DNA of 64,000 nucleotides. It comes from Pelomyxa schiedti. Lineage: Eukaryota > Protista > Evosea. Below the pieces are notes generated by a model. The model was not told the origin of the DNA, did not search any database, and saw only the letters and a program-made list of their open reading frames with translations. Below, piece by piece: positions 2,285 through 64,000 of the stretch. The position numbers were made by a program, and so were the translations under genes. How positions within the stretch are numbered: position 1 is the first letter of the stretch; each line of letters opens with the position of its first letter. The DNA is taken from contig JAHLWZ010000197.1 of the NCBI GenBank assembly GCA_020536535.1, positions 62,001 through 126,000 of the forward strand, written 5' to 3'.

Positions 2285-5108
<2,824 letters not shown>

Positions 5109-17979: not shown

Positions 17980-20900
17980 TCACATCCTCCTGTACACAGT
18001 AGGAAATTGTGCATTTGATGTTGTTGGATTTTGTGGTTGTTGATATCCACGTGGCTGCGGCACAAACTGTGGTTGTTGTTGGGTTGTTTGTTGTTGGTTC
18101 ATGGGGGAGTAATGGGGTGTACCATACGGCGTGTGTTGAACTTGTGTGGGTGGTTGGTAACGGTACCCTTGTTGATTGATGGTTCCTTGGGCGGGGTTCA
18201 TGGGCATTCCAGTAATAGTTCCTGGGTAACCACCGGAATTATTCATGTACATAGGTTGTGGAATTCCGGGAGGAGTTTGTGGTTGCTGCTGTAGCCGGTG
18301 CTGCTGTTGCAGTTGCTGCGCAGAGGAGGTCAGGCCTATTAGCTGCTGGCCCGGGGTGAGTTTGTTGGAGGTGTTTGGGTAGTTGGCAGGGGTGAAGCCA
18401 CTGTAGTTCTGGAACTGCTGTGGAGACATTGAGGGGACTACACCAGGGGTACCAGTTGGGTTGGACGAGCGAGAACCATCTGGTAGGGTTGCGTAGGTTG
18501 TGGCTTGGAGTGGTGGTTGCTGTTGTGGAAGTTGTTGCTGAAGAAGTTGTTGTTGAAGAAGTTGTTGTTGCTGTTGCTGTTGATACAGAATTTGCTCTTG
18601 CTGCTGCTGAAGCTGCGCTTGTAGTATCAGCTGGTCAAGTTCATCATTAATTGGTGTTAGGTCTCCTTCCATTGTACTTTTCTCTGTATCCATCTCCATT
18701 GCTGCACTCTGCTGGCTTGATGCAAAACTCTGGGCTGTCTCCAGTAAATTCTTTGCTTCCGCTAGGTACTCTTGTACTTGCTTCTCAAGCAGTATAAGTA
18801 CTGTGCGGTCACCCGAAGCAGCCAGCACGGCGTTAGTCATCTCTGAGCACTTATGGGAAGCCTCATTACGAATCTGATCCAACCGACATTTGTGCTCTTC
18901 CAGTGCTGTCTCGTCAATCATCTGCATTTGGCTGTCTGCCTCTTCAAGCTTGTATTGGAGTGCCTGCATCTTTTCTGTGAACAAGCTGTGGCGTTCTGGG
19001 AATCTCTCGAGGCTTGTAATTCGTTGCTGGAGATCTGAAAGCATCTTCGTCATTGCTTGGTAGTTATCCCTCATATTTCCTAGATACATGTGGTAGGCAC
19101 CCTCTTCTTGTTTGAAGTTCCCTGCAATTTCTTCCATTTCTTGAAGCATCGTTTGGGCACGGTTATTGACAGGGCTTGGAATAGGTGGTACTGGGTGTGG
19201 AGGTATAACGCCTGGTTTGTCAATTGGGAGTGGAGCGGGCCTAGGTGGACCGATATAATTCAACGCCCCGTCAGTAACAGAGGATTGCAAGGGCGGTTCT
19301 ACACGGGTTTTTTTTAATCCTTCATAGGCAGAAAAAAAGAATTACCAGGGAGCTCTATACCATGCCAAGTAATCTCTCCCGGAAGATTTTTCTCTTCTTC
19401 TTCTTCAACAGGTTTTGGTGGAGGAAGAACAGACACCTGCAAGTTGTCAACTGGCTCGTGATACTATATTGTCAATGAGTGAACATAAAAATACTATGCT
19501 GAATCATACTTCATTTGCTGGGACAGTTGAAGCGTGCTGTTGGAGACAACGTGAGCATGCGGAAAAACCGAGAAATATATTCAAAAAAAAAAGAGAGATA
19601 ATGAACCACTGACATTGGCAATGGCCACAAGCAGACTGCCACATAGAGTATGAAGTTGCCGCATTAAATAGCAATAATTTCCCACTCTCAAATTTCCAAT
19701 CAAGGATTCTATATCCTTTTGTGTCACATTGTCTGTAACCTATGGATGTTGGGTGAGGTGTTCCCAGCAAATCTGGGCAGGAATAAAACAACGAGGATAC
19801 ATACAACTGCTGAGTAATCACCAAAAAGAGATTTTAGTGCACCTTCCTGGTTTAAACCCAGTTTCTCAAGCTTCAAAAACCCAACAATAGCATTTGCTAC
19901 TGCATGGAAGCGCTTTTTTACCTCAATTGTTCCTTTCAGGATCTTTTTTTTTGAGAGAAAATTTAATGGAAGTGGTGAGTAAGGTATTCATTTTTTGTAG
20001 ATGGTGTTCCCATACCTCTTCCACTTTCTTTGAGAAATTGGACTGAACAGATTCAGGGGGAGCCATGTCATACTTGTCAGGCATCCCAGCAAATAACCAC
20101 TGCTTCGCTCGGTATTTGGTCAAAACGTTTATTACAACGACCCCAATGCACGCAAAACGCTGATTCTTGAGGGGTGCAAGGGCGTTTGGCATCACCTTGG
20201 AAGGTAACAAGTGCGTCCACACTGCACCAAGGTAGGACTCGGGCTGATTTTCTGAGGGTTGAGAACGTAAACCACGTTGTAGGTTTTCAAGAAGCTGTGT
20301 CAGGAGCTGCATTAATTCTCTGATGTGTTCTTCAGTCTCTCCTGGATTAAAGATCAATTTTATGCAGGGAAGTGCATGTGGAAAAACCTTTGAGAGCTCT
20401 TTCGAACTGAGCGTAGCAGTGACTCTGCAACGGTCGCTTGAATTCAGGTTGCAACCTGGTGTATGTCATTGCTCAGGATAGGAATAAAAAAAAAAGATTA
20501 GGAGGAAGTGTGTACCTATTTAACTGAAGTTGAAGAGAAAAATCGAGTTGATCCTGACCTTCAGTACGCTCAAGTTCTGGATGCTAGAAAAAAAAAAGGT
20601 ATTAAAACAAGATCTGATGTTGTGGGACTGGAACTTGATCAGCTGGGATATCAAGGATGTCAAGAGGAAACACTGTTCTCATGCTCTCCACATCGGTCAA
20701 CATAGCTTTGCCAGCCAAATAGCGCTCAATCACCTGTTTGTGGGGTGTCGGCAATCACACCGAAGGGAAACTTGCACACATGTCTCTGAAGTCTGTTGGC
20801 ATCAAAATGTAAGTTACATCTTTTTCCATTGGCTGGAATTTGGCAATGTGTCACAAGGGTTCTTTCAATATCCTGCACAGGACCTCCCGTGACCAAAATT

Positions 20901-23900
20901 TCTATCGTGTGAAGGCAAATGTTATGGAGGGTAAGTGAAAAAGAAAGCGAACGGAGATAAGTTGAGTTCGGAATGGCATCAACGTTGTAGGAGCTGGAGT
21001 GAGATGATTGTTCGAAAATGAATCCAAAAGGGTTGATTTCATCTGTGGGTATTCTTAGATAATGTGGAAAAAAAGAGAGATTCCCGCCTGTGTCAGACTC
21101 ATTTCGAAGTTGAATCAGTGAGTTTTGAATTTCAGTCATTGTTCTGATGACAGTGAAAAGAAGGTCTCCTTTGGTCACATCTTTCCAACTCACTAACTCA
21201 AAAAATGGAGTCTCGGGTCCAATCTCCGGTATTTTTATACTGTAATAAAAGGGGAGTTACACTGAGTGGGAAGGTAGGCACGGACACATACTTGAGTTTT
21301 ACATCATTGAATCCTGTCACAATGGCCTTCCAAGCATCCAGGAATTTCAGGTAGGCTGAAGAAATAGACTCTTTATTTGCTGGGGAGTTGCAACCAACCC
21401 ATTCAACACAGTCAGAAAAAGTGCCAACAATTCGATCTTCTGTTGGGAAAATGAGTGGAATATCCAGATGGAAGCACCGTAGAAAACCTTTCATCAGTGG
21501 TGCAAACACAGAATTCAGCAGCTGGTAAAAATGAACCAAAGTAGGCAAGTGTGAGAAAACTCTCAACACAGGGGCTTTTTGCAAGAACGTTGCAAGAAGC
21601 CCGGTGGATGAAAGTTTTTTGCTCTGGCTCTGGATGAGGTCATAGAATTCGCCACCACCTATGATACATGAAGGAAGAAGTGCCATAGCTTCGGTCCGCC
21701 TTGTTGTGACATTTTTGGTTCCAGGTTTACTGTACCGGAAGAGGATTCCATCAAAACATTAGCATGAAGGAATGTGAATTCGAATTACATGTCTTCAAGA
21801 CTCAAGAGTTGCAGCGCTTCATGGTCTTGAAGAAGTGCGGTGAAAATTTCTTCTGACGTGATCTGGCCAAGGAAGAAGTCTCTGGCATTTACAGCCAGTG
21901 TCGAGCCAGGTGAGAGAAGCTGAAAAGAAGGAACCTTAAAAATTGAACAAAAGAAAGTAAAAATACCTGTGAAACAGCTTGGACAATCTCTGGCTTGATT
22001 TTGCGTAGTTGTGCTGAGAGGCCTATCGGCCCACTTAGAGTGGAAGCAAGGAGGCCCAGAAGAGTGGTCCTGCTGGCCGCTTTCTTCACTTGAAGTAAAA
22101 CGTGTTCTCCTTCTGGGGAAAGATGTGAAACACAATCGTGAGTGCGTAACCGGAACTCTTGATTGTTGTACCTCTTGGGAATGATGTAAGGATCTTATAA
22201 GCATCCTCCAGTGTTTTGATTTCCAACGTTTTACACGATTGGTCCCCCCTTGATGGGCACATGAATTTAAGCAGAATGTGATATAAAAGAAATTCCAGAG
22301 GCAAGTGTGTAGTTGGAATTTGGGTGGGGGAAAGAAGGTCTGGTGAGTATTGGTAAGTTTCTGCAGAAAATGAAGGTTTTGTATCTGCTATTAACTGTTC
22401 AGGAAGTGGTGAAAGCAATGGATAAGTGGTGCATATAAAAGAGAGAGGTTAGCCAATTTGGAATGTCAAGAAGTCCATACATCAGAGGTGAGCTGAAGAA
22501 TTTCAGAAATCCAAGCACTCGGTTTTGGTTCAAGCCATGAAAAAAGAAAGTTGGCAACCCAACCAATGTTTTCAGTGATTTTTTTGCAATAGACCCTCCA
22601 AACAGGATTACTTACGAAGTCTTCATGTGAATCATTGCAAATCTGTGAGTAATATTAGGAAACCCTCATGCACAAAGAAAAACGTGGAAAAGACTGAAAC
22701 ACAAACGGAACTAACTTGGAGGAAAGAAGAGAAATTGGCCTTGGCGTCATCGGAAAGCATTGACTTTTCTGATTCCTGAAGCATGTAGTCAACAACACTG
22801 CACATTGATTGTATATCTTCGCCTGTGGACCTGGAGGGATCAGGAGGAAGAAGGTTGAGGGCAAGGAGCAGTCCAGCTTTCAACCGTGTGCTGGGGGTGT
22901 AAGGTGTTGACACAAACTGTCCCAGTATTTGGGGCAAGCCAGGGTTCTGGGTGAGGAAAGAGAAAGTGGGCTTTAAACCTGGTGCCCGGTAATTGGAGAG
23001 GAACACAAACACAACGTGCATCGCATCAAGCTTCAGAATTGCATCGGGACTGTTTGAGAGAAGGGTGGCCAACTCGGGCCTTGACTTCAAGGTGCTGAAG
23101 AAGTGGTGGTAAACTTGGCCCCAATTCACAGTGGCATTGGAATCGAGCTTTGGCCCTCCAGTGAGGATTTCCTTTGTTAACCGCTCCCACAGCAGATCAG
23201 TGGTGAGTGTTGTGACCCACTTCTCCATCTCTTGAAGTTGGTTTTTCTCAAACCTTGGTGGCCTTCTGCACCTGTCAAACTGCTCTGGTGTCAGGGCAGG
23301 GTTAAGAAGCTGCAAAGGAGTGACAAGCGCCTTGAAATAACTGATTTCAGGTTCATAGAACCTCTTGATCACAAACAATTCAGGGATGTCTTCCACAAGG
23401 CCTATCTTGAACGCTCGGAGAGAACTGAGAATCATTTCCATGAACCGGCCCAGCCTGCCCTCTAAATCATCAGTGTTGGTGGAGCCCAAAAGCTTTCTGA
23501 ACTCTGAGATATGGAGGGTGGAGAGCTTCAGTGACCTGGTCACAAAATCCCGTTTGAACATGTCGAACAAAGGTTGGTTCGTGATGCTCTCAAGAAGTTC
23601 GGCAAGGAGCTTGTTTGACTTGATTGACTCGAGCACTTTCCCATGCAAAATTTGGGGAGAGGCTTTTTGATGGCGCAGCTCTCTGGCTGCACGAATGACC
23701 TGGGTGTTGACAAGATGTGCAATTGCATCATAAAAAGGGAGCTCAGGTGGAAATGGATGTGTCCTCAAGACAGTGACAGTGGGGGTAGAATTCAGCTGCT
23801 TGGAATTGGTGAGCACCGATTTCCCGAGTTGAGGGATTGGAATGGTGCAGTAAACGCGGTGGACCAACTCCAACAGTTTACCTTTATGACGATTATTAAA

Positions 23901-26900
23901 CATGTTCAGCACAGAATTGAGTCCAAATGAGGAAAGCATCATCTGGAGCATTGAGCTCACCAGTGGAGCCATGAAGTTGTGAAGAGAAGAAGAAATTGCA
24001 GTAACAAAGCTCACCACACAAGACCCACGGAACAACTCCGTGCTCGCTTCACACACGAGTTTATTGAGGAATCCAGAAGTCCAGGAACGGCTGAACTGCT
24101 CGAGAATCCCTTCATACAGAACTGGGTTCTCTTCGAAAAGTTGTTTCAGGATCTGGAACCTTTCCTCACTTTTTGCTGCAATAAGATTTTGTGGGGAACC
24201 ATGTGTGTCCACGTTGTTCGGTTTCCCATAAAAGTCCTTTGCCTGCTCATTGTCAAGTGTGGAGGTTGTTGTGTTGAGCCCACTGCCAGTCATGAATTTG
24301 CAAAACTGCTGAAGGAGTTCGAAGAAGAAACCTCTGAATGTGTCCACTTCTTGGGTTGAGGAATCCCGTTTCATGCGGTCAGACTCACTGTCCCTCAGGT
24401 TCAACCCAAACGCTCTCGCAAGCCATGGGCGTGGGTCGACTTCAGTGTGTGGATTTGCTCCAGACGAACCAGCCACAACACCCAATGCATCCACATAAAG
24501 GAAGTCCCAACCCTTGAGGAAAATTGCTTGGTAAGCACTCCCAGCTCTCAGCCCAATTTCTGGTGAGAAGTGCAGCAGGAGAACAGCAACACGGTGGAGA
24601 TGTTGCTCACGTTGTTGCTGTTCCTCCATTACTTTCCACCTTTCATTGATCTCATTCCTCAGGAAGTTGATTTGATTTGGAGTTGCAACTGATAGGTCAG
24701 CAACACACAACAAAAGAAGTTTCTTGGGAGAACAACAAAAATCATGGACACGGGAAGAACATTGTTGACTTGATGACATCTCACCAAGGCTCAACACTTC
24801 CATCCAATCCTCGGGGTTCTGCTCTGCCCCTTGTGGAACAGAACCAGTTTGAACAAGCACGTCAAACATCTTCCTTTGGAGTTTTTTGTCTGTTGGAAGC
24901 TTGATGATTTCAGCACTGGTTCGTGTGAACACACACCATTTTGACGCGTATTCCCCTCTCTGGGGAACAACCACTGTTGTTCCTGTTAGTTCTATTCCCT
25001 CTCCAGTTTGATCACCCGTGGCACCCAAGAATTTTGACGGTGCATGAGGAGCAAAGGAAAAATGTGCTTGACAGAGGTATCCAAGGAAACGGTAAAACGA
25101 GAAATGCTCCTGCTCCAAAAGGTAATTGTGCTTGTACCTCACTGGGAGCTGCTTGCAAAAGTAAATCGACTCTGGTTTTGCAAGCTGAAGAAGGTGAAGG
25201 TTGGCTGAGATCATGTATTCCCGCATGTTCTGCTCCCAATGATCTCGTGCACCAAAAAGTTCAAGTGTTTCGGGTTGAGTGCCAAGCAATGGGGGGAAAA
25301 GAGGGACAAGGGAATTGGGGTCTTCCTCTTGAGCCCGAAGTTTGCTCATTTCAAGTGTTCGTTCCAACACAGTGAGAACAAGTGAACTCACAGTTTCTTT
25401 TGGAGTCACACCATAAAACAGTCGACTGTTGGCTGCAGTGGTGTGCAGCTCATGTACCATATTCTGCGCCCCATTGCACAAGACTTCATAAGGATGCAAA
25501 GGTACCCGGCTTGTAGGGGAGATGAGTTTGGTGAGAGGTATCATCTGAAGCCTCTCAAAGAGTGCATCATCAATTCCAAGGCAGTATTTCTCAAACCGGT
25601 TGAGCAGGGGAGTAGGAATTGTCTGAAGGGAGGATTTCGGCACATGAACGATGACACGGAAGTTGTCATGAACAAGGCACGGCTGTGAGAACGACCCAGC
25701 AGCGAGATTGGCGTAACAAAGCCTTGTGCTGGAGTTGGTTGGATCCTTTGCCATATCTTGCTTGTTCTTTGGCATGATCGTATAATGTCGGTTGAAAACA
25801 TCATAAAAAGAGCTGTGGATGCTGGCAGAGTTCACCAAGACAATAGTTTCCCCCTTTTCCATTGCCACTTTGACTTTTTCCACCACTGCTGCTTTCACTC
25901 TCTGGTCACTGTCGTCTCGAAAATCCCCAATATAGCACACACTGGTTTGGTTGCGATCGCACAGTCCCAAGTCAAAAAGCAAAGATACTGCAACTTCGTT
26001 TTCAGTTGGATCGAGCTGTGGAAAAGATCAGATACAATTTTACTGGTGTTTTTTTTTTTTCAACACACACCAGCATGATGTATCTGAACGGGGCAGTGTT
26101 TGGGTCATCAGCATCAGTGAGTCTCTCTGCCAGACTCTCCTTGATGGAGGCAATCTCCGTTCTTCGTTGCTCAGTTGCAGGTTCTGTCCATAGTGGCTGC
26201 CCATATTTCTTCAGTGCTTCATTGATGTTGTAAAAGAAGTTGGCAACAAGTTTGTCAAAATCACTCTGAACAAGTCCCCCAAAGTTTCGACGTAATCCAG
26301 CAAGAACCACATCCTGGGAAATGTGGAAAGCATCTCCTGCTCTGTTTCCTTCTGAACAGTGTTTTCCAAGATAACGGAGGAAATAGACGAAGTCTCTGAG
26401 GTGGAAGAACCTTGCTGGGTAAGGTGACCCATAAAATCTATTCACTTCTGCCTGATAGGCTGTGCAAAGTGCTCCAAGAATTTCTCTTGTTGCCCAAGCA
26501 ATACCGCTTGTCTCATTCCCATATATGCACCCTGAAATTCAGAGTTACAAGCAGTGGGTGGGTGAGAAACTATTTTCTCAAACCTTCAGCCAAAGTCTGC
26601 AAATCTGTAAGTGGTGGCTCACTCTGTAACAACATCAGTGTTCGATTGGTCTTGGCCTCATCAAGAATCCTGTTGGACAACAACACTGAAGAAACTTTGG
26701 GGTGATCCAGCTTGAAATGCAAAATCTAGCAAAAAGAGTCAAAGGAAAAGATTTTGTTATCCTGCTTTGGTAGTTCACACCTTCAATGGAGACTTCTCCT
26801 CGTTGGGAAGTCCAACTTCATCAAGAAGGACAGCACAACGTTCTCTGGAGTTGGGAGGGAACGTACCTTGCCTCTGAATTGCAGATTCATAAACAGACTT

Positions 26901-29900
26901 GATTTCTGTATCGGTGGACTGCTCACTGCACTGATACCGGAAAGGGAGCACATGGTGCAAAGCCCGATAAAACTCTTTTGGAGATGTCTGTCCCTTCATG
27001 TTGTCAACAGCAACCTTGAAACTGAGTGTCTTGGAGCAACCACTGGGTAAAGTTAGACAATCAACGGGGGGATGTGAGAGCGTACGGAGGACCAACAATC
27101 ACCAAAGGAATCTTGGCATCAAGGCACACAACAGTGCAAAACAGGTTTTCCATGAATGCGTTGGTCTTGGCAATTCCAGGTGGAAGATGGGTGTTGTTGC
27201 ACAACGAGTTGAGTACACCCTTGTTGAGGTAATCATCCCACATGTTGAGATATTCCGGGGCATTGTTGAAGTTGCTGTTGATGAACTTCAGAAGGGAATC
27301 CTGAAACTGATCCCTTGTCCAAGGTGTTTTGGCTTGGGTTGCTCGAAGTGGATTCTCTGAAGGCACCCTGCTCTGCTGCTCAATGAAGTCCCGTGATGGA
27401 AGTCGAAAGTAATATGTCATTGCGATCGAAATTGCCTTTTTTTGGGTCAAACCAAAGAAAGAGGGGAGGAAAAAAAAACTAGGCAACCATTGCTTGCCAA
27501 TGAACGTGAGTGCCGTAATTTGATTTCGAAGGATTTGGAAGATTGCACATGAACTGCTTGTGTTGGAGAAAGTAAATGTAAAGATCAATGGCTCGAACAA
27601 TGTCTCGGATGCTGGCAGCAACACGGTGGATGTTGGCTCTATTGACAAAGTCTTGACCAAACAAGACAAGTGATGTGAATTGATTCGCACAGGTTTCATC
27701 AACAGCCGCGTAATCCTTCAGGCGAGATGATATCAAGCCGCGGGTGAAACTCTCCTCTTGCTGTTTTGTCAACTTGCCAAAGTCGACAGTCATCTTCTCC
27801 ATTGAGAGAGGAGGTGGTCTCACTGCAAAGGATTTGCTACCAGACTTGTTGGGGACGCCAACAAAGTCAAACTGGTATTGCTGTGAAATTGAAGACCTTT
27901 CCACATCCAGGTTTTGCCTTGCACGGTTAGCCGCGGGTGGAGCGGCACTGTTCTCGTTCTTGTTGAGTGCGGCCACAAAGAAGATGTTCTTGGGAAGTGG
28001 TTCGCCATCCAACCTTGAGTCACACATCACCTCCTTCACCATTCCAAGCAAGCTGGTTGATGTGCACTCGTCAATGAAGCAGACGACCTTCGCATCTTTT
28101 GGAAATCTTGTTAGTGACTCCTGGATCTTATTTATCCTTGATCTGAATTCATCTGCAGAAATACGCTGGTGCATGCGAATCCGGTGAAAGACTGTCTCAA
28201 ATTTGGCATTTCTAAATGACTTCACCAAATCAGCAAGAGTATTTGGATCCCACGGTTCTCCAGGATTGTCTGGCTGTTTTTTTTATAAGGGAGAGGATTT
28301 AAATTAGTTTCTGTTTTGGGGTGTTATGTATGTTCTTTGTTGACGTAGACTTTTGTATTGCCACTTACTTGGGGAGTCTCAGTCATAACTCTTAGAAGAG
28401 TACCCTCCCGTACAATGTATTTGCGCTTCTCCAAATTTTTCTTCACGAATTGTATAATCCCGCCCGCGAGCTGGGGGAGAAGGTCATTGTGGGTGTTGAA
28501 CAGGTCAAGCACAAATCGCTGGAAGTAATCATTGTCATCCAACCACTCAAGGCAGGTTTTTGCAGCTGTGTGTTGGGGAGCCACTATTTTCAGAGGTGCT
28601 TGAGGGATATCAGTTCGTGGTCTTTTTGGGCGGTCGGCATCACATTGAGTCCAAATCGCTTCACACTGAGCCAGTAAGGCTGGGGGAACAGCTGGGATTC
28701 CACTGAGCATTTTCGAGAGAACAAACTTCTTCATCTTGAAAGCCAAGTCAGGCATCATCTTTGCTCTCGAATTGATGATGATGCTGAATACATTTAGGAG
28801 TTCTGTTTTTCCAGTTCCTGTGCCTCCACAAAGGGTGAGATTGTGTCCTGCATTCATGTGGTCATAAACAAGTAACATCTTCAGTGCAAAATCGGGTGTG
28901 AGGATGTACTTCTCCCTCTCAATTATTTCCAAAAGATTTTCCATTCCAAACGCCAATTGCAATTGTTGCCGAAGTAAACCAGGGTTCTTTGCCATTGCCA
29001 ATGTAAAAATCATGTCATTTGGAAGAGATAGGCCTGGGGGAGGACGTTCCATCAAGGCAAGTGCCGTTGGAAGTTGGAGTCCTGCTGCATCTTTTCTCCG
29101 GGCGTTTTCTCGGGCAATGTAAACTTGTTTCTCAGAATCGAGAGTGGGATTGCACAAAAGGAAGCTCTCTTCCACAAGCATCTGAAAGAGTTTGCTGATT
29201 AACACCATTCCTTTGAGGTTGTGGGCCTCCTCGGGATTATTCTGGAGTTCCAGTCGTTGGTGGGCATGAAATGAAAGCCACGTGCATCGATCTGCAAGAA
29301 GTGATACAAAGTGGTGCTGCATCATTCTATCTGACTGGAGGGAAACAGTGGAAACAGTTGCTGGTTTGAAGGAATGGAAAAAGTCCTCGAGCACAGTTGC
29401 CGCAGGCCCAAAGGAAGGAGGGTTTGCATCAAGTTCTTCCACAAGGCCAGATGGTTTGTCAAGAAGGTTCTTCGCCTTGGCTTGCAAGAACTTCGCGACA
29501 AGTAAGGCACTGTTATCCACAACAAAAGGGAGATCACACTGCTTCACAAAGGCTCCAAGGTGGCTCAGGATGGGAATATTCTCAAGAACAAGCTCGGTGC
29601 TCTCAAATCCAAAACCTTCCAAAGCATCAGAGGCTGGTGCAGCTGCCAGCTCAACAAACAAGTTCCACCTGAGGTTTTCCCGAGAAAGGGGCACCATCTC
29701 ACCTGTCTCAGCGTCCCACACAACACTCCACATGAGCATGTTGTAAAAGAAGGTGGAAACGACATTCATGTCGGCATAAGCACTGATGTCGAAGTGAACA
29801 TTGGCCACAAAGGGAGTCCCCTCAGCACCACTAACAACTTTCAACATAGGGGACAGTTTTGGGATCACATCAGACACAGAGAAGCACTCGGTCATGCTGA

Positions 29901-35900: not shown

Positions 35901-36256
35901 CTTCCATATCTGGAGCCGTGTCCCGGCAACATACCCAAATACCTCACCGCGGCCAACAACCCCCCGATGATCCACGACACGTGCTCTCCGAATTGTGGGT
36001 TGGTCTTCTCCTTGTTCCACTGGTCGAACTCGTTGAGCAACGTGATCACCTGCCGGGTGAAATTCTTGTCCAGAAGCACCGGCGCCACGAACGAGGAGTT
36101 GTGTTGCTCCTGCGGCGGAAGCGACGCGACGTACTTGCTCACCGCGTCGGGGACCACCGCCCCAAGCAACGTGTGCAGTTGCGTTGCGGCGTCGTCGGGC
36201 CCCGTTGATCCTTTGTTTCGGCCCATAAGCCTCCCTACAAACGGGAAGTGGTCCAT
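17980..36256 (-). CDS. Giant RNF213/mysterin-like multi-AAA+ ATPase (probable single gene, on the order of 5,000 aa, many introns)
   Basis: Walker A motifs: GGPCTGKS (~29960), GGTGTGKT (~28815) and GPP/GCSKT (intron-split, ~27040-27090). Walker B motifs: CFIDE (~28075) and VLLDEVGL (~26820). RNF213-like segments: YILTPDFALKML, ASIRDIVR, ENLFCTVVCLDAKIPLVIVGPP, FFHLRDF, LRRNFGG, GETIVLVN..FYDVFNRHY and CLVHDNFRVIV..PTPLLNRFEKY. At the 3' end, in-phase splice links (PANE|VSVLPPP...IELP|EPPLQSS) connect to the 436-aa Q/P-rich terminal exon. Not every junction was verified. Confidence 0.85.
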
Positions 36257-46700: not shown

Positions 46701-47121
46701 TTAAGAACATGGCATTATCAAACAGGTGACTACCAGAGACAGAACCACGCCCAGGCAGCATCTTTAGACCCCGTATGGCCTCCGTCAACCCCCCAGCCAT
46801 CCACGACACGTGTGTCCCAAAATCGGGGTTGTTCTTACTTCCGTTCCATTGGTCAAACTCATCCAGCAACTTCATTACCTGCGCCTTGTCCACCAAAGTA
46901 AATGGTGCCGTGGATGTCAATGTCGGCGCTACTGCTGGTGTTGGTGTTGCTGTAGCTGCTTTTGGCGCTGTTGGTTCAGCGGGACTGGCTGGAAGTGAAT
47001 CTATTCTCTCCCGGGCAACTCCTGGCATACCAGACAAAAGAATGTAGAACTGTGTCGCGGCGTCTTTCGGCCCCGTCGTCCTCTTGCCACCACCTGTAAG
47101 GAAACGAAACAAGCCAGCCAT
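40710..47121 (-). CDS. Chimeric gene copy 1: RNF213-like N-terminal module + coiled coil + PINK1-like non-RD protein kinase
   Basis: Exons 42959-47121 are paralogous to 32031-36256 of the giant gene. After intron 42918-42958, the terminal exon encodes IANGSFGTV, ALKMMFNY, HCDIKPDN, DLG, GNAQNRAPE and KNDVWAVG. Confidence 0.88.
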
Positions 47122-47200
47122 TGTTGTTCAGGTTGGAAAAAAAGTTCGTTCGCCGTCTTCTGGGAAGAACACTCGAGAATCACAAAAATTTGGGCCTTCT

Positions 47201-52913: not shown

Positions 52914-53038
52914 GCAGGCGCCGAAGAGCCTCGATCACAACTTGATTTTTTTTTGGGCGACAAGAAACAACTTTCTTGCTTTTTCTTCAAAAAAAGAAAG
53001 AAGAACCCCTTCAGTGCCTATTTAGTTGAAACAAGCCT

Positions 53039-56000
53039 CTAGGAGAGGAGATTGAGGTTGTAACGGGGAGAGGAGGCAGCATCGAGGAATGAGATCAAAG
53101 CACGAGCAGCAGCAGGCACGTCACGCAGTGCCATGTTGCAATAAACAAGACTCATCACTTCATTCACTGTGGCTTGAAGTGGTTCGAATGTGGGTGATGT
53201 CACTGAGGGAACAACGTCTGTGCCGAACCGCAGCCCGTTGTGCTGGAAGACATCTGTCACAGTCCGCTTTTGCACCTCCAGAAGTGCTTGTCGGATGGCG
53301 GTTATCATGTCCTCAGAGATCGATTGCGTGGGTTGAGGGTGTTCACTTGTTGCAGTTGCCGAGGTTGATTGGTTTGGTGGTTGTGTTGACGTGACCGAAG
53401 GGGCCGAATTCTTCTGTGCTCGCTGCTGTTGGATGTGGGTGACGAATGTGGTGATGACCTGTTTCGGGAGTATCAGAAGTGCACTGCAAGTGAGGAGTGC
53501 CTCACGTGAATTGGGGCGTCGGGTGCACTCGCGCTCAAGGAGCCACCCAACAAGCCCGGAGACCAAAGCGGGTGTGATTGTGGGATCGGTGTGGGTGTCA
53601 TGTGTGAGGGAGGAGCAGTCTGGGATGACGGGAGGGAGTGTGGTGTCTCGGATAAGGTTGCTGTTCACCTGGTTCTCAATGGTGAATGGATGCCGGCCAG
53701 AAACGACCTCGTAGAGAACACACCCGACAGCCCACACGTCGTTCTTGAGAAGTGGGAATTCTCGTTCTGCTTGAATCACTTCAGGTGACCGGTTTTGGGC
53801 ATTCCCAGTGAATGTTTCGCCCTTGGGCAAAACCAGAGGGTTCCCACCTTCGCAGAACACGGCAGTTCCGAGGTCACAGAGAGCCCAGATGTTTCCTTTG
53901 ATGTGTGGCCTCTCCATCAGCAGGATGTTGTCGGGCTTGATGTCACAGTGGAACCACCCTCGTGTGTTTAGGTGGTCAACTGCACACAGCACGCAAAACG
54001 CAAGCTGGAGCACATCCTTTGATTGACAAAGTGGATGATGCTGGTTCTGGGGAGACATGGATTGCAGTTGCTGTGATGTTGGGAGAGTGGGCAACACTTC
54101 TGCTGTTTGCTGCTCAATGTTGACGATTCTTGAAGAAATTATGGATTCCAATGTGCACTTTCCCAGTTCCATTGTCATGAACGTGGTTCGCTGATAAACT
54201 GCAATGGCTCTCCGACTGTCGCGGCACCCTGATACCAAATTGCGGTTCGAATCCACAATAGTGTAGTCACCTCTCAAGGACTCCTCAATCAGAGTGAGTA
54301 AAGTGTCACCACGGAAATGATTGAAGACATTTGTGAAGCACCAATGTGGGTGTATCACTGAGACTTCATATTCTCTTTCAAACGCTGTTCTCAATTGGAG
54401 GGTCCTTGGACCAGCACTGTAGTTGAACATCATCTTCAACGCCACCTCTGTCGGGGCACTGTGGGCTCCACTGCTACGCAGCCACTTGGGAAGAACAACA
54501 GGAACTTTGCACACGGTTCCAAATGACCCGTTGGCGATAAAGGTCGCTCTTGTGAGGTCAAGTTCGTTCAGTTCCACAAGTGCCATCACTCCTGTCTGGA
54601 ACCCACAGAGGACTACTTCCAGGTTATGTGCATCTATAGTGTAGGTATGTTCTAGTGCCCTCTTTTCTATGATGAGAGATTCGTTCCTTGCAGTGTTAAA
54701 CTCAGATTCTTGTTGCTGCAGTGCACTGTGTATCTTCTCAAGTGCATTTCTTTGCTGTTGTAGAGAATTTTCTTTTTCCAATTCAGTTACTTTCTTTTGT
54801 TGCTCAAGTGCATTTTGATTCTCGGTTGTAAACATAAGCTCTTGTTTCCTAAGTTCCCCTTGTAGTTCCGCTTCGAATTCACTTCTTTGTTGAAGCAAAG
54901 CCTTTTCTTTTTCAACTTCAAGTGCGATTTTTTGTTTTTCAAGGGCGTGGTGCTTCTCAGTGTTAAGCAGATCTGATAATTGTGTGAGTGCACACTCCTT
55001 TTCACGGTTATGTTTGGCAGCCTGCTCTTCAAGAGCGCGACACAAAGTTTTTTGCTGTAGAAAGGCATTTGGCTTTTCAGACATTGCAACACGATCTTGC
55101 TCCCCCATAAGTGGGAGTAAATGGGATAGAATGTCCTCAAGCTAAAATGGTGAGAAATTTTTGTTTTATCAGAATGACCTGCCTGTTTCTGCACTTTGGA
55201 AAAGTGTAGCGGACACAATTTCAGTGAAACTTGAGAGGTGGTTAGGGAGTGATGCAAATCTGCTAAGTCCTTGGCCGTTTCACTGCATAAATCGTATTGC
55301 TTGCAACAGTATACAGCAGGAGGAATGAAATCCAAGTATTGAAAAAGAGTGAGGCCTTCTTGGAGGTAATGCTCCAAGTCAAATGACGGATCGTAACCCA
55401 ACTCGGAAAAGTACTGAGTTCTATAATGTTCATTAGGATAAATGCTTTGTCAATCACACACATAATTCGGAATTCGGTAGCAATTCCTCTGTTCTCCGCT
55501 GCTTTTTGTATGTCTCTTATCTGGTTTGGCGCGTTAATTGATGATTTTGAGACCACCCATTGACGGCTATTTGTCAAATCACAACCTGGTTGAGCCTTAG
55601 GTTACCAGTCTGAAGTTGCCTCAAATCAGCTGTAACTGCAGATAGAATTTCTTCAAGGTTATCTGGAGGCACTTCCTTATTTCCCTGAAAGATACAAATG
55701 GGCAGCCCTTAAAACCAGGAAGGAAATTATACATAGTTCTTTTTTGTGAAGTCTATGAACCAAAACTCAAAGAAGGCACTGCCATTCACCAAGAAGTATT
55801 TCAACTGTTTTTTGGGGAAATTTGGCGAGCTAAGACAAACAACGTGAAACGAAGGAAAATACAGAATTAAATGGCTGATCACGCAATGGAATTGCCTGGC
55901 GAAGCTCAATGCAACACTGTTCAACACCGCATAATGTTTCTCTCTAATTTTTTAAAAATGTCGTTGTATATTAGATGAAAGGAAATAGTAATGGGCATGT

Positions 56001-59000
56001 CTGCTGAGTGGTACATTGACATCAGAGGTGACAGGTCCGATGTGAACTCTTCCTTTTTGCTCAAGCCAATCCCGCACAACGTGCAGGTGGTGGAGCTGCT
56101 CTTTGACCTCCAGGAACTGACAGTAAACCTGTCCCATGTCCGGCAAATTCACATTAGGGAACAGTGCCTTGCCTATCTCAACAAGTTGAGCATATTGTGT
56201 GCTCTCCCCTGTGGGTTCCTTTTTCGATGACATTCCTGTTTGTGCGATGTGGTGATGTGATTGCTGATCACGCACTGGTGGTCCTGCAGATGTTTTGCTT
56301 GGTGTGTTGGGGGTGTTGCTTTGTGTAGCTATCGTAGGTCTACACCATTGTGAGAGGAAAGGAATTTGATGGTACCAAAAAGAGTACACATACAACTGTT
56401 GTTCTCCAGCAAAAGCTTTTACCTCCTGCAGGGTCACTAGTTTGTTGAAGATTCTGTCAACTTGTTCTTTGATGGTCTCACACAACTTGGTTTTTTTTTT
56501 AGAAGGTGGTTGTAAGATTCAGAGGTCTCACCTGTTGGCAGCCTTGTTCATAGTTTCCAAAAAAAGGGTGTTCTAAGTTCAAGTCCTTGCATTGGAACAA
56601 GGACAGAACAGATGGAGTGAGCTTCATGACTTCATCAACTGCCATCATGCACCTTGGGCACACACTTTCCATCAGAACTGCAATGACAATTGAACTCTCT
56701 CTCTCTTGTTTTGAGAAGCTGGAGAGGTGCAGTTTGAGCCATTCTCCGAGGGTGCAAAGCTGTGTGGAGATTGGTTTCTCTGGAGGGGTTTTGATGCTGA
56801 CAAGAAGAGAGGCTGCAGAAAAAGAAGAATGAGGCCAAAAGAACTCTAAAAATGAGATTGCAATACCAAAAGTCTTGAGCATGAGAAGGAACAGTGGTGA
56901 CTGTATTTGGTCAAGCTTTTCTGCTTCACACTGCAACAACCACCTCACGGTGCTGGGAAATTGCTGTATCAATGGTTTCACATCAACCTTGTTTGTTTAT
57001 TCTTGAGACAAAAAAAAGGGAAGGAAAGGGGGTTCACAAACATCTTTCATGATGTCTCTCAATAAGCCTACATCATGGTCATCCTCAAAAGAAAAGAGAG
57101 TCGAGTATTCAGGGCAGTAAAGTGAAATCCGAATGAATGGAACGATGTTTCTGTTCGCTTCGTCATGGTTTGACTGATACGAGAAATAAGAAGAGAGAGT
57201 TGAGTACAAACATGAAACAGGACTTGAAAGATTTTCGGAACACATCATTCAATGGGAGGAATTTGAGCCTCGGATCGTCAGACTCTGGGTTGAAGTTGTA
57301 TCGAGAAACCAGTTTTTGTGCATATTTGTCCAACACACAACCAATTTGAAGTGGTTCCCACACAACTGCATTGTTCACCAATACACTTCGGAGAAATTCG
57401 AGTTCAAGGAACTTGATGGGAATCCTGTCACCAACACTGTCAAAGAAGAGAAAGAAACAATGAGATGAGAATACTGTTGGAACACAATGTATGAAGAAGG
57501 TGGTGACGATTGAAGGAAATGAGTCACTGATGAACCAAAGAACTTGGAAGTGTTTATTAAAGTGGATTCGACAGCCTCAAGTCCGTACTGGAGTGTTCTC
57601 TGAAGAATCATGATGTGAGATGAGTGAAGGAAAGAAAGCAGAGAGATACAGAGAAATAAGCAAACCTCCAAGAAAGGAGCAGTGAGAGACTGCCTCTGTC
57701 CTCTGCATAAAGAAATGAGGAAGAAAAAGCCAATTCAGGAAGGCACAAACAGATCTTCCAGGCCAGTAGTAGCCAATGCAATCCACTCCAACCAATACCA
57801 CCACTGTCCCATCCTCTGTGCATTGCCAGTCTCTCCTTGTCTCAGAGAAGGGCATGTGAGGTTGAGCAAATCATGGTAACACTTGCTGAGTTCCTGAAAA
57901 AATAGCCGCGATTGTATGAGTGAGAAATGAGGAGATAAAAAAGAATTGCGGAGGAAGGAGACCAACCCGAATTACATCAGTGTTCCCTTTGGGAATGGAA
58001 AAGCCACCAGGACAAATCCAATAACTGTTTTGCACAACAATATCACATGTTGCCTCTGCACTTTCCCGGTCAGCACCTCTGAGTTCCCTCTCAAAGAGCT
58101 TGACAGCACCTTGCAACACACTCAGTGACACCATTGGTGACATCTTCAATGAGAGTTGCTTGTAAAGAACTGGTGGTCTGAACAGGTGAGAGAAGGTTCC
58201 ACAAACAAATTGGAAAAAACACACTTGTTGAAAAAATCAACAATAAGACTGGGAGAACTTCGTGGGAAGAACTGTTCTTGAACAAAATTGTTCCATGCAT
58301 AAACATAAAGGAGCTGGTTTTCAAAAATAAACCATAAATAAAGGCAGTGTTTAAAAAAAAAAAACCTGATGGTCATTTTGAATCCCTTTGATGAAGTTCA
58401 GTGTCAAGTGCAAAATTTGAAGTTGAAGTTCATATTTGGGCTATTTGTTCAGCTGGCAAGTGAGCAGTCAAAAAAAAAAAATTTAGAATGATACAGTCAG
58501 ATATGTGCTTTGCAGAATAGCCACATTTGAACACCTGCAACCTAAAAGCTGCACAAGCAAGTCAAACAGAGAAGAATCTTCTTGTTGCAGCCCTCTCAAT
58601 GCCTGTGGCAAGGTGTTAAAGAAAACCAAGAAAAACAACAGGAAAATAGACAGTTAAGATGACGTCATCTTTTTCAGCCACCATTGTTTCGTCAGGTGAT
58701 GGTGAATGAAAAATGGAATCAAGGACTTCACTTGCAGCTTCAATCAGAAAATTGAGAGCCTCCTCCCTCTTCTGCAGAGTTTTCTCGAAAGAAAGCTCCC
58801 TGTGGAAAGTATAAACACAGAAGGAAGCTGTCTTGTTGTGGGGCATTGTCTTCAAAAACAAAAATGCAATTACAGCAGCCACGCAACTCGAGGAGCCTCA
58901 GGAGCATGTAAATGAAAAACGGAGCGTTGTCAAATAAGTAACTTCCATATCTGGAGCCGTGTCCCAACAGAGTAATCAAATACCTCACCGCGGTCAACAA

Positions 59001-59300
59001 CCCCCCGATGATCCACGACACGTGCTCTCCGAATTGTGGGTTGGTCTTGCTCTTGTTCCACTCGTCAAACTCGTTGAGCAGCGTGATCACCTGCCGGGTG
59101 AAATTCTTGTCCGGAAGTGGTGAGTGCAAGGGCGACGGCAAGTTGGGCTCTTCCGGTGGCAATGACGCGATGTAGTTGCCTATCCCGTCCTTTATCGCCA
59201 CCCCAAGTAGCGCATTCAGTTGCGCTGCGGCGTCGTCGGGCCCGGTCGTTGATCCTTTGGGACGACCCATCAGACGGCCGAGAAACGGGATGTAATCCAT
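53039..59300 (-). CDS. Chimeric gene copy 3: RNF213-like N-terminal module + coiled coil + kinase
   Basis: It starts MDYIPFLGRLMGRPKGSTTGPDDAAAQL, very close to the giant gene's start. The junction intron is 55142-55182 (GC-AG), followed by a 689-aa terminal kinase ORF. Confidence 0.88.
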
Positions 59301-59677
59301 GCTCTGGTTTGGCGAGGTGACTTCGTGTAGCTGTAGTTCTAATCACTGATGTATTTCTGGGAAAACTAGGAGTAGATTCTCCTAGTTTAGTGCCCGCGCA
59401 AGGCGGGAACAACATTGTAGTTGCTCAAGCAACCAAGTAGTCAACAATATACTTGTTTGTATTCGGGCTTCTTTCTCCCTTACACAAGTAAAACAACAAC
59501 CATCAACCCCAGCACACTCACAGGGGAGCTGTGTGCTTTGTTAGCCAGTGGAACATTTTGCTGAAGACAGCTTAGGGTTTTCCATGCCGCAAAGCTGATG
59601 CCATCTGGTCCTGGGGCTGATTTGGATTTGAAGGAGAGAGCATATCTGGATCAGTGGGCGGTGATTTTTTTCCCTAT

Positions 59678-59749
59678 CAAAAAGTGTATCATCACCGCCC
59701 AAAATCACCGCCCGGGCGGTGATTTTGGGCGGTGATGATGCACTTTTTG
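59678..59749. repeat. Near-perfect 72-bp palindrome built from GGGCGGTGAT units
   Basis: caaaaagtgtatcatcaccgcccaaaatcaccgccc|gggcggtgattttgggcggtgatgatgcactttttg has 36-bp arms, no loop and one mismatch. Another gggcggtgattttt unit sits at ~59656. Confidence 0.92.
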
Positions 59750-59760
59750 CAGTCAAATCT

Positions 59761-59860
59761 NNNNNNNNNNNNNNNNNNNNNNNNNNNNNNNNNNNNNNNN
59801 NNNNNNNNNNNNNNNNNNNNNNNNNNNNNNNNNNNNNNNNNNNNNNNNNNNNNNNNNNNN
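59761..59860. other. Assembly gap (100 N placeholder)
   Basis: Run of 100 N. Confidence 1.
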
Positions 59861-62800
59861 TGATGACCTGTTTCGGGAGTATCAGAAGTGCACTGCAAGT
59901 GAGGAGTGCCTCACGTGAATTGGGGCGTCGGGTGCACTCGCGCTCAAGGAGCCACCCAACAAGCCCGGAGACCAAAGCGGGCGAGATTGTGGGATCGGTG
60001 TGGGTGTCATGTGTGAGGGAGGAGCAGTCTGGGACGACGGGAGGGAGTGTGGTGTCTCGGATAAGGTTGTTGTTCACCTGGTTCTCATTGGTGAATGGAT
60101 GCCGGCCGGAAACGACCTCGTAGAGAACACACCCGACAGCCCACACATCGTTCTTGAGAAGTGGGAATTCTCGTTCTGCTTGTATCACTTCAGGTGACCG
60201 GTTTTCAGCATTCCCAGTGAATGTTTCACCCTTGGGCAAAACCAGAGGGTTCCCGTCTTCGCAGAACACGGCAGTTCCGAGGTCGCATAGAGCCCAGATG
60301 TTTCCTTTGATGTGTGGCCTCTCCATCAGGAGGATGTTGTCGGGCTTGATGTCACAGTGGAACCACCCTCGTGTGTTGAGGTGATCAACTGCACACAGCA
60401 CGCAGAACGCAAGCTGGAGCACATCCTTTGATTGACAAAGTGGATGATGCTGGTTCTGGGGAGACATGGACTGCAGTTGCTGTGATGTTGGGACAGTGGG
60501 CAACACTTCTTCAGTTTGTTGCTCGATGCTGGCGATTCTTGAAGAAATGAGGGACTCCAATGTACACTTTCCCAGTTCCATTGTCATGAAAGTCGTTCGT
60601 TGGTAAACTGCAATGGCTCTTCGACTGTCGCGGCACCCTGAGACCCAATTGCGGTTCGAATCCACAATTGTGTAGTTACCTCTCAAAGACTCCTCAATCA
60701 GAGTGATTAAAGAGTCACCACGGAAATGGTTGAATACATTTGTGAAGCACCAATGTGGGTTTATCACCGAGACTTCGTATTCTCTTTCAAACTCTGTCCT
60801 CAGTTGGAGGGTCCTTGTGCCAGCACTGTAATTGAACATCATCTTCAACGCCACCTCTGTCGGAGCACTGTGGGCTCCACTACTACGCAGCCACTTGGGA
60901 AGAACAACAGGAACTTTGCACACAGTCCCAAATGAGCCGTTGGCAATAAAGGTTGCTCTTGTCAGGTCAAGTTCGTTCAGTTCCGCAAGTGCCATCACTC
61001 CTTTCTGGAACCCACAGATAGCTACTTCCAGGTTATGTGCATCTATGGTGTAGGTATGTTCTAGTGCCCTCATTTCCATGATGAGAGATTCATTCCTTGC
61101 AGTGTTAAACTCAGATTCTTGTTGCTGCAGTGGACTGTGCATCTTCTCAAGTGCCTTTCTTTGCTGTTGTAGAGAAATTTCTTTTTCCAATTCAGTTGCT
61201 TTCTTTTGTTGCTCAAGTGCATTATGCTTCTCGGTTGTAAGCATAAGCTCCTGTTTCCTAAGAGCCCCTTGCAGTTCCGCTTCGAGTTCACTTCTTTGTT
61301 GATGCAAAGCCTTTTCTTTTTCCACTTCAAGTGCGATTTTTTGTTTTTCAAGAGCGTCGCGCTTCTCAGTGTTAAGCAGCACTGACAATTGTGTGAGTGC
61401 ACACTCCTTTTCACGGTTGTGGTTGGCAGCCTGCTCATCAAGAGCGTTACACAAAGTTTTTTGCTGTCGAAGCTTGTCAGAAAATGCAACACGGTTTTGC
61501 TCCCCCATAAGCGGGAGTAAATGGGACAGAATGTCCTCAAGCTAAAATGGTGAGAAATTGTTGTTTTACAGCTGACCTGCCTGTTTCTTTACTTTGGAAA
61601 AGTGTAGTGGACACATTTTCAGTGAAACTTGAGAGGTGGTCAGGGAGTGATGCAAATCTGCCAAGTCCTTGGCTGTTTCACTACATAACTCGAATTGCTT
61701 GCAACAGTAGACAGCAGGAGGAATGAAATCCAAGTATTGAAAAAGAGTGAGGCCTTCTTGGAGGAAATGCTCCAAGTCAAATGACGATTCGTCACCCAAC
61801 TCGAAAAAGTACTGAGTTCTATAGTGTTCATTAGGGTAAATGTTTTGCTGCTTACGTGGGGTCAGATGTTGTGCAATACATCAAGCACACACATAATTAG
61901 GAATTCGGCAGCGATTCCTCGGTTCTCTGCTGCTTTTTGTATGTCTCTTATCTGTGTTGGAACGTTAACTGATGACCACTCATTGAGGCTTATTTGTCAA
62001 ATCACAACCTGGCTGAGCCTTAGGTTACCAGTCTGAAGTTGCTTCAAATCAGCTGTAACTGCAGATAGAATTTCTTCAAGGGAATCTGGGGGCACTTCCT
62101 TATTTCCCTGAAAGATACAAATGTGCAACCCTTAAAAACAGGAAGGAAATTATACATAGTTCTTTCTCGCGAAGTCTGTGAACAAAAACTCAAAGAAAGC
62201 ACTGTCGTTCACCAAGAAGTATTTCAACTGTTTTTTGTGGAAATTTTGCGAGCTGGGACAAACAACGCGAAACGAATGGGGAAAATACAGCATTTAATGG
62301 CTGGTCACGCAATGGAATTGCCTGGCAAAGCTCAATGCAACACTGTTCAAGGTCACATAATGTTTCGCTCTGGTTTTTTAAAATATCGTCGCATATGAGA
62401 TGAGAGGAACTAGTGCCGAGCGGTACATTGACATCGGCGGTGACGGGGCCGAGGTGAACTCTTCCTTTTTGTTCAAGCCAATCCCGCACAATGCGCAGGT
62501 GGTGGAGCTGCTCTTTGAACTTCAGGAACTGACAGTAAACCTGTCCCATGTCCGGCAAATTCACATGTGGGAACAGTTCCTTGCATATCTCAACAAGTTG
62601 ATCATATTGTGTGCGTTCCATTTTCGATGGCCTTCCTGTTTGTGCGATGTGGTGATGTGATTGTTGTCCGCTCTGATAACGCACTGGTGCTCCAGTAGAT
62701 GTTTTGCTTGGTGTGTTGGGGGTGTCGCTTTGTATAGGTCTATCATCGTAAGAGGAAAGGAATTGAAGGTACCAAAGAGAGTACACATACAGCTGTTGTT

Positions 62801-64000
62801 CACCAGCAAAAGCTTTTACCTCCTGTAGGGTCACTCGTTTGTTGCAGATTCTGTCAACTTGTTCTTGGATGGTGTCATAAAACTGAACTTTACAGTGAGT
62901 TGTTTGTTGGGTTTAGTGTGGAGTGATCTCACCTCTTGGCACCCTGTCTCATAGTTTTTGAAAAAAGGGTGTTCTAGGTTCAAGTCTTTGAGTTGAAACA
63001 AGGACAGAACAGATGGAGTGAGCTTCATGACTTCATCAACCACCATCATGCACCTTGGGCAAACACTTTCCATCAAAACTGCAATGACAATCGAACTCTC
63101 TCTCTCCTTTTTTGAGAGGCGGGAGAGGTGTGGTTTGACCCAGTCTCCAAGTGCACAAAGCTGTGCTGATATTGATTTCCCTGGTGGTGTTTCGATGCTG
63201 TTCGAGAATATAAGTATGCCCACACAACGTGTGGTCAACATGAAGAAACAAGAGCATATTGTGTTGAGGAAAAGAAAAAATAGAGATGCAATACTTGACA
63301 AGAAGAGAGGCTGGAGAAAGAAGAAAAAGAAAAGTGAGGGAAAAAGAATTGAACAAATGATGATGAGATACCAAAAGTCTTGAGCATGAGAAGGAACAGT
63401 GGTGACTGACTTTGATCGAGTTTTTCCATTTCAAGCTGGAACAATGACCTCACGGTGTTGGTAAATTGCCGTGACAGTGGTTTCACATCAACCTGGTTTC
63501 CTTGAGATAAAAAGAAAAAAAAACAGTGGGAAGAGGAAGGGTCAACTCACATCTTTCATTATATCTTTCAATACTGCAATGTCACGATCATCCTCAAACG
63601 AAAACAGGTTTGAGTATTCAGGGCAGTAAAGTGAAACCCGGATGAATGGAACAATGTTTCTGTGTGTATTGCATTGATAAATAGAAAGAAATGAGGGGGT
63701 CAGTGCCACACTCACATGAAACTGCACCTGAATGACTTGTAGAGCAAGTCACGCAATGGGAGGAATTTAACTCTGGGATCACCAGACTGTGGATCGAAGT
63801 TGTGTCGGGAAACAAGTATTTGGGCATATTTGTCCAACACCCAACCAATTTGAAGTGGTTCCCACGCATTTGCATGCCTCTCCAAGACGCTTCGGAGAAT
63901 TTGGAGTTCAAGGAACTTGATTGGGATCCTGTCACCATTATAAGAGTGGAGAAACCAAGAAAGGGGAGGAGAATACTGCTTCAGCTCTGCAAACGTGCAA
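59861..64000 (-). CDS. Chimeric gene copy 4 (5' part beyond window; 3' end lost in assembly gap)
   Basis: The kinase exon is nearly identical to copy 3 up to the N-gap. The junction intron is 61542-61580 (GC-AG). Upstream exons are paralogous to the shared module and continue off the window end. Confidence 0.85.

Follow-up and report, generated by a model that had tools for sequence, protein, structure and literature searches.

A stretch of 64,000 nucleotides (nt) from the genome of the amoeba Pelomyxa schiedti (contig JAHLWZ010000197.1, positions 62,001 to 126,000; hereafter the window) carries a giant gene of the RNF213/mysterin type together with four co-oriented genes, A to D, each of which joins a copy of the giant's N-terminal module to a coiled coil and a PINK1-like kinase. 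RNF213 is an animal protein that coats bacterial invaders, and PINK1 is an enzyme linked to Parkinson's disease. We denote the three building blocks M (module), G (core) and K (kinase), so that the window holds one M-G gene and four M-K genes, and giants that end in a kinase are G-K genes. Our preferred reading, to which we assign a probability of roughly 0.4, is that the module serves as a scaffold for targeting or docking, to which exchangeable effectors of the ubiquitin pathway are attached, and that its targets are perhaps the cytosolic endosymbionts. The scope is a single species, P. schiedti, whose published genome comprises 52.4 Mb in 5337 scaffolds, with 7.4 introns per gene and 1.59% GC-AG introns, and was assembled from whole-genome-amplified DNA of seven cells (PMC8887013). 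The assembly analysed here holds 52,367,397 bases in 5,337 contigs.

The front module of the giant recurs in four kinase genes

The initial annotation had proposed that the first ~4.2 kb of the giant gene recurs exon for exon in four co-oriented genes, and this was confirmed by both self-BLAST and spliced alignment. The module exons of the giant were curated by hand and then aligned, allowing for splicing, to each module copy. Identity at the DNA level (self-BLAST) was 65-89% among the five module copies and likewise among the four kinase exons. The modules encode 1020 (giant), 998 (A), 966 (B), 1012 (C) and 1010 (D) amino acids (aa), with no stop or frameshift in any of the five copies. The 20 module introns are common to the copies in position and phase, except for one uncalled in B and one in C, and all 21 exons of the giant module are GT-AG bounded. 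Among the shared motifs first listed, LRLLEL is present up to its last L, which is intron sequence.

All four M-K genes lie on the minus strand. Gene A (40710..47121) consists of the module (47121-42959), a 41-nt GT-AG intron (42958-42918) and a kinase exon (42917-40710). Gene B (47201..52913) has the same layout, with the module at 52913-48960, a 43-nt GT-AG intron (48959-48917) and a kinase exon at 48916-47201, as does gene C (53039..59300), with the module at 59300-55183, a 41-nt GC-AG intron (55182-55142) and a kinase exon at 55141-53039. Gene D occupies 59861..64000 and starts outside the window at 65847; its module runs to 61581, followed by a 39-nt GC-AG intron (61580-61542) and a kinase exon that extends from 61541 to an assembly gap. 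In each gene the intron joins the module in frame to a single intronless exon encoding the coiled coil and the PINK1-like kinase, and each kinase exon matches Pkinase (expect value, E, about 1e-23), in agreement with the original description of the array modules as running into a coiled coil and a kinase.

A phase-0 intron of 39-43 nt follows the last module exon in all five genes. The exon beyond this intron begins with LGNM in the giant, FGDL in a paralogous giant and FGDI, FEDI or LEDI in the kinase genes. Because these post-junction codons resemble the giant's next exon, we place the break point a few codons into that exon, with the old acceptor kept. The public annotation, a separate prediction made from the same DNA and hence not independent, also fuses module and kinase in gene B (KAH3765630.1, 1,523 aa), in a gene on contig C70 (Pelo_889) and in a short-module gene on C347 (Pelo_4334).

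Whole-genome amplification, the gap within the array and the resemblance of an M-K gene on C1382 to A, of which it could be an allele, would all be compatible with fusions or mosaics created during assembly, or with module and kinase being separate genes. However, a raw-read DNA contig spans 60989-61770 with zero differences, and since it crosses the D junction, that junction is not a scaffolding error. Furthermore, only 39-43 nt separate the exons, with conserved splice sites, and the module-kinase fusion occurs at no fewer than seven loci on five contigs, the copies being 5-40% different. An assembly artefact, or module and kinase as separate genes, both named at the outset as something that could overturn the proposal, are in our view very improbable.

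Read data consisted of contigs from four runs, all of one study. RNA coverage was thin (5-7% of words for gene A), and unspliced contigs of the RNA runs could be DNA. An 811-nt RNA-run contig (depth 18) had 20 differences from D, in the same count and listed positions as kinase A, and so matched the kinase A tail at all 20 diagnostic differences, by count. In a 191-nt RNA contig the intron at module codon 344 is spliced out, and the best fit is to exons 6-7 of the giant (11 and 4-5 differences); a 311-nt RNA-run contig matches the last module exon of D.

The end of kinase D is hidden by the assembly gap, a run of 100 N at 59761..59860. Sequence beyond this run shows no homology with the tail of any of the kinases A, B and C, and kinase D is without the last 137 codons present in C, equal to at least 411 nt vs 100 N. 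None of the contigs of the four runs bridges the gap. The first count of at least four kinases is thus matched by four kinase exons, of which three encode complete kinases and the fourth (D) is open-ended. The gap lies behind the catalytic motifs of D and touches no module-kinase junction. The annotated protein Pelo_2547 (2,417 aa) fuses D with C over the unbridged gap and was rejected as an annotation error.

Abutting the gap is a palindromic dispersed repeat of 120 bp (59641..59760), with more than 25 copies in the genome, most of them 95-100% identical and often at contig ends. Read depth over the repeat is 500-1200, vs 20-100 nearby. It resembles the end of a young non-autonomous transposon, and the stretches adjoining it (59336-59640) are also repeated. 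As a second copy lies upstream of gene D (C197:128336-128462), the repeat may have belonged to the duplicated unit for a long time and need not have inserted into kinase D.

The giant gene encodes an RNF213-type ATPase

The giant gene (17980..36256, minus strand) encodes 5,132 aa in 51 exons, supported by an open frame through canonical introns and by its match to RNF213. Its N-terminal module (32031..36256; 1,020 aa, 21 exons) is an all-helical solenoid plus bundles, its AAA+ core (25550..30912) is marked by Walker motifs, and its last exon (17980..19298) encodes a helical domain and a Gln/Pro-rich tail and is the same exon as that found in the giants on C347. Walker A motifs are located at residues ~1582, 1966 (= human K2426, AAA3) and 2495 (= human K2775, AAA4), and the Walker B motifs of the core are intact. 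A long exon of the giant matches RNF213 (E 7e-8), and a full-length paralogue does so across the AAA3-AAA6 region (E 7e-48).

Searches by Pfam and by sequence for a RING, an RZ finger or a CxxC pair downstream of the core found none, either in the giant or in two full-length paralogues; the RZ model matches a Soliformovum relative, so this search was able to detect the domain. The initial label of an RNF213-like giant holds for the core, which by its sequence is that of an RNF213-type ATPase; since RING and RZ finger are both missing, the protein is not an E3 ubiquitin ligase (E3) by motif. Comparison with the helical scaffold of the RNF213 E3 module gave no sequence match, and the model of the C-terminal region was poor (predicted local distance difference test, pLDDT, 43). 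An annotated split of the giant at 27482 (Pelo_2541) was rejected; a 52-nt intron restores the frame there and two paralogues are continuous at this point.

Structure and relatives of the module

The AlphaFold model of the B module (pLDDT 78, predicted template modelling score 0.51) is all helical, with a solenoid of ~420 residues and then bundles. A CBM20 beta-sandwich is absent from this model, which begins at the first residue, and is likewise without a Pfam match. Homologues of the module precede the core in P. schiedti giants on C11, C448, C526, C579 and C791, which identifies the module as the normal front end of the RNF213-type giant family in Pelomyxa; for contigs C448, C526, C579, C781 and C791 the assessment is based solely on the coordinates of matches and on P0023. 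The last third of the module has homology (E 1e-8 and 1e-14) with the sequence ahead of the core in non-Pelomyxa giants. For the first half, no relatives outside Pelomyxa were found among 1.84 billion representative proteins, and a lectin match (E 4e-4) was rejected as chance. ESM Atlas returned nothing for either module half when searched by features and, by shape, only generic TPR/Vps35 solenoids (template modelling score, TM, by query <= 0.35), and VIA-align gave only generic helical repeats. Two stand-alone proteins, Pelo_1620 (P0024) and Pelo_6685 (P0025), correspond to the module's first ~300 residues only and have no Pfam domain.

Assuming colinearity, and with an AAA3 offset of ~450 residues, the module projects onto residues ~455-1475 of human RNF213, a stretch that covers the stalk and runs into the linker (domain boundaries as given in PMC7311170). 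Homology of the module to the RNF213 stalk is thus likely by position and weakly supported by modelled shape.

The kinase is PINK1-like

Profile comparisons place the kinase domain nearer to PINK1 than to other kinases. Insect and human PINK1 filled the first ten places in a search with the kinase family profile (65.5 bits vs 51.5 for ROCK2), PINK1 was the sole kinase matched by the N-lobe profile (E 0.01), and a metagenome scan with the kinase matched only two insect PINK1 genes. Profile alignment (hhalign) to insect PINK1 gave 99.3% over 323 columns. With a single kinase sequence as query, PDK1 scored slightly above PINK1. The catalytic motifs VA(L/V)K, FxREYE, HCDIK, CD(L/F)G and R(A/S)PE are intact in A-D, and an invariant Thr is found two residues past the position aligned with Ser205/228 of PINK1. 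As judged from the sequence, a mitochondrial targeting and transmembrane segment is absent, and the module and coiled coil are found instead. HCD replaces HRD family-wide in these kinases; non-RD kinases are mostly linked to innate immunity (PMC3085482).

The kinase family has 36 matches or more on about 30 contigs. Kinases of the M-K and G-K genes form a single clade with that of a RING-NHL protein (support 100/100). The latter protein, Pelo_3218 (P0013; TRIM-like RING, B-box, NHL), ends in the same-clade kinase, with much of the N-lobe seemingly missing as annotated.

Three blocks occur in different combinations

Three giants on C347 have a core 80-85% identical to that of the window giant and end in a single open frame composed of the helical domain of the giant's last exon, a coiled coil and a kinase. 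Two of them were traced upstream and start in the linker, without a module, one at less than 1 kb from the previous gene's stop; the third is cut off by the contig start. The G-K splice on C347 rests on homology with the window giant, because the annotation makes one of these last exons a separate gene (Pelo_4332). Across the loci read, the M-G form occurs in the window and on C11, G-K on C347, M-K in A-D and on C70 and C1382, and a short-module M-K form on C344 and C347, with module length in M-K genes ranging from ~450 to ~1,000 aa. The proposal that a common module is coupled to alternative back ends is consequently borne out by the M-G and M-K genes, whose copies are intact.

These combinations can also be explained, in our view with rather low probability, by the division of one machine. 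M-K and G-K genes would be complementary halves of a module-core-kinase ancestor. M-K proteins would lend the stalk in trans to the module-less C347 giants, pairing via coiled coils and PINK1-type kinase dimers, and each copy would set a different specificity. In keeping with this, the C347 giants begin in the linker and the M-K genes hold only the module, both types share related coiled coils and one kinase clade, and PINK1 autophosphorylates as a face-to-face dimer. However, none of the loci read holds a complete M-G-K gene, the tree does not resolve branching inside the kinase clade, the linker's first ~150 residues are found in neither half, and recombination of the modules is visible with the kinase-less giant but not with C347. 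In a more far-reaching reading of similarly low probability, an RNF213-type machine would now be split into stalk-kinase, core-kinase and stalk-core genes, with PINK1-type ubiquitin phosphorylation replacing ligation and gene-converted stalk variants telling tolerated from unwanted cytosolic symbionts.

Segment exchange and selection

Over codons 137-445 the giant module was 90-97% identical to that of D, and several of the introns matched at 89-100%; over most of 517-720 it was 92-100% identical to those of A and C1382. D and C were 89-94% identical over 692-1020. Trees of three module segments conflicted, each rejecting the other two topologies (approximately unbiased test, p <= 0.012). Together, these identity blocks and conflicting trees indicate that the giant and the kinase genes have exchanged sequence by gene conversion or unequal crossing-over. 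The pairwise ratio of non-synonymous to synonymous substitution rates (dN/dS) was about 0.37 in the module and lower (0.18-0.25) in the kinase lobes, and the first 60 module residues were the most variable. From the intact frames and purifying dN/dS we conclude that module and kinase copies are kept functional. Of the tandem diversification first suggested, the tandem paralogues with segment exchange stand, and selection is net purifying, not diversifying. The companion idea that the module is a sensor fared less well given this selection and the missing CBM20 sandwich, and remains an inference.

Selection also bears on the rather unlikely explanation that the fusions are by-products of a mobile cassette, an intronless coiled-coil-kinase exon that lands in frame in many genes. 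The module would then give the kinase a promoter, a location or bulk, the array would have arisen by unequal crossing-over, and there would be no link to the giant or to defence. The size and spread of the kinase family, its fusions to actin, an MSP domain and RING-NHL, the lack of introns in a genome this rich in them, the variable length of the module and the weak RNA coverage all fit such a cassette. Yet purifying selection has preserved 1,000 codons and 20 introns in each of the copies, at synonymous divergence (dS) up to ~0.9, which argues that the module does something in the kinase genes.

What it does could be inhibitory. In C and D, a GT donor 4 nt downstream of the GC donor would yield a product ending module-Ala-Ala-stop, and such module-only forms, together with the M-K proteins, could act as dominant negatives or decoys that restrain an RNF213-like attack on resident symbionts, either by occupying the giant's docking sites or as bait for symbiont effectors. 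The segment exchange, which leaves the giant module 92-100% identical to parts of D and A, would suit this role, as would the need of the host to tolerate an essential cytosolic methanogen (PMC10579272). Nevertheless, the GC donor outscores the GT donor for C and D under a locally trained matrix, no transcript was found for either form, and the catalytic motifs are intact, all of which leads us to regard a decoy function as distinctly unlikely.

A proposed targeting scaffold with exchangeable effectors

From a large family of intronless PINK1-like kinase cassettes, one subfamily joined the RNF213-like family, and recombination then yielded M-K genes and module-less G-K genes beside kinase-less M-G giants. 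Under the preferred reading of a scaffold with swappable effectors, the module, as the equivalent of the RNF213 stalk, would act as a targeting or docking scaffold and bring the kinase to the giant's surface or complex without the ATP-sensing ring. There, the kinase might tune a ubiquitin-based response by phosphorylating ubiquitin, a ubiquitin-like domain or a partner. Of the possible settings, management of the prokaryotes free in the amoeba cytosol would be the most likely.

That the detached module is a self-contained unit with its own job is suggested by its having been joined to a kinase seven times or more, with open frames and under purifying selection. In human RNF213, CBM20 and the adjacent stalk are under strong positive selection and are the suspected pathogen recognition surface (PMC11549300). 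P. schiedti harbours a methanogen and a deltaproteobacterium free in the cytosol, as well as a probable parasite in vesicles (PMC10579272); with two prokaryotes free in its cytosol, it would need to regulate any RNF213-like system. This endosymbiont biology makes an immune role plausible.

Several observations count against the scaffold reading. The C and D junctions depend on a GC donor, a class that makes up 1.6% of introns in P. schiedti, and no RNA contig, at thin coverage, crosses any module-kinase junction; for splicing across the junction, which had been proposed as a check, no transcript was found. No sequence match was found between the module and RNF213. In the suggested Foldseek comparison RNF213 ranked 2nd and 6th of 350,542 chains, but the likeness was weak (E 1e-4, TM 0.20) and the other chains around it were generic solenoids. 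There is no sign of net positive selection: module dN/dS is 0.27-0.39 by segment and none exceeds 1, these being pairwise averages only, in which recombination and averaging could hide selected sites. On the kinase side, PINK1 Ser205/228 is not kept in A-C (Met, Met and Pro in A, B and C; Thr in D), and an insertion similar in place to insert 3, which PINK1 requires for ubiquitin, shares little sequence identity with it, an invariant Arg preceding beta5. Finally, a fusion to the RING-B-box-NHL protein also occurs in the kinase clade, and fusions to actin and to an MSP domain occur in the wider family, so pairing of the kinase with the module may be one of many fusions.

Other genes in the window

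The remainder of the window contains ordinary genes, encoding Hsp90 (2-1840, plus strand), dynamin (2288-4187, minus), an ankyrin-repeat protein (6872-7258, minus) and an M3 peptidase (15625-17715, minus). Three long open frames of 311-401 aa have no Pfam match (9492-10544, minus; 11884-12816, plus; 12964-14166, minus). A CCHC zinc-knuckle (CNBP-like) gene at 36681-37778 (plus) stands head to head with the giant; a related CCHC gene adjoins the module-bearing giant on C11 (19881-20462), so the CCHC gene and the giant were probably duplicated as a pair. Between the giant and gene A lies a gene with a SUMO-like (Rad60-SLD) domain (38806-39123, minus).

Significance and comparison with known systems

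Literature searches, which covered few subscription papers, turned up neither a fusion of RNF213 with PINK1 or any other kinase nor a survey of PINK1 outside animals, in line with the initial annotation, which knew of no description of the fusion. Both parent families are known, as is domain shuffling in tandem arrays; new here are a front module separated from its giant, M-K and G-K forms that complement each other, and segment exchange involving the giant. RNF213 recognises very different pathogens, and the role of its stalk is hard to test because deletion of the N-terminus causes aggregation (PMC11549300). If the machine has been split with ubiquitin phosphorylation in place of ligation, the isolated stalk would be a natural tool for asking whether the stalk targets RNF213, and a single, ancient logic of surveillance would connect RNF213 and PINK1, studied apart in animals. 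Outside animals, RNF213-type giants have varied tails (Gln/Pro, PINK1-like kinase, USP-like), and PINK1-like kinases, as identified by homology, occur away from mitochondria in an anaerobe with cytosolic symbionts.

The Pelomyxa giant resembles RNF213/mysterin in its size (~5,100 aa), its dynein-like core with AAA3 and AAA4 Walker A/B motifs in register, and the long helical N-terminal region ahead of that core. It differs in having no CBM20, RING or RZ finger, and in its tail, where a helical domain is followed by Gln/Pro-rich sequence or, in paralogues, the protein ends in a kinase. It is also one of many related genes, and kinase genes have taken over the front part of this family; none of these differences is known for RNF213.

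For the kinase, PINK1 is the best solved-structure match of both lobes, including the KMMFNY motif, and the C-lobe match reaches through the helix that leads into the C-terminal extension; the catalytic Lys, Glu and both Asp are intact. In contrast to PINK1, the Pelomyxa kinases have no mitochondrial targeting/transmembrane segment, carry HCD for HRD, have Ser205/228 replaced in A-C and a divergent insert 3, sit behind a 1,000-aa module and a coiled coil, and have dozens of paralogues.

Non-Pelomyxa RNF213-like giants were found in assembly GCA_049309645.1 and two metagenome contigs. The UCH/USP-type deubiquitinase tail is clear at L042:6999-8528, weak at L044:15292-19060 and without a Pfam match at L043:15251-18250. 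These protist giants share the core subfamily (26-32% identity) and homologous pre-core and post-core helical regions with the Pelomyxa giant. They differ from it in that two of the three have a ubiquitin hydrolase-like tail and no kinase, and in having no module-kinase neighbours in the ~15-25 kb read. Such tails keep the giant family in ubiquitin biology. In the metagenome, a second multi-AAA gene follows the RNF213-like giant (L044:20338 onward; L045:12798 onward).

Modular innate-immune arrays include receptor-kinase clusters and nucleotide-binding leucine-rich repeat (LRR) receptors with integrated kinase or decoy domains. The Pelomyxa array is like them in its tandem paralogues, alternative partners, segment exchange and non-RD kinase. 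Unlike them, its genes contain neither an NB-ARC/NACHT nor an LRR or transmembrane part, net positive selection was not observed and HCD is family-wide, not array-specific; the part that its members share is the RNF213-like front end.

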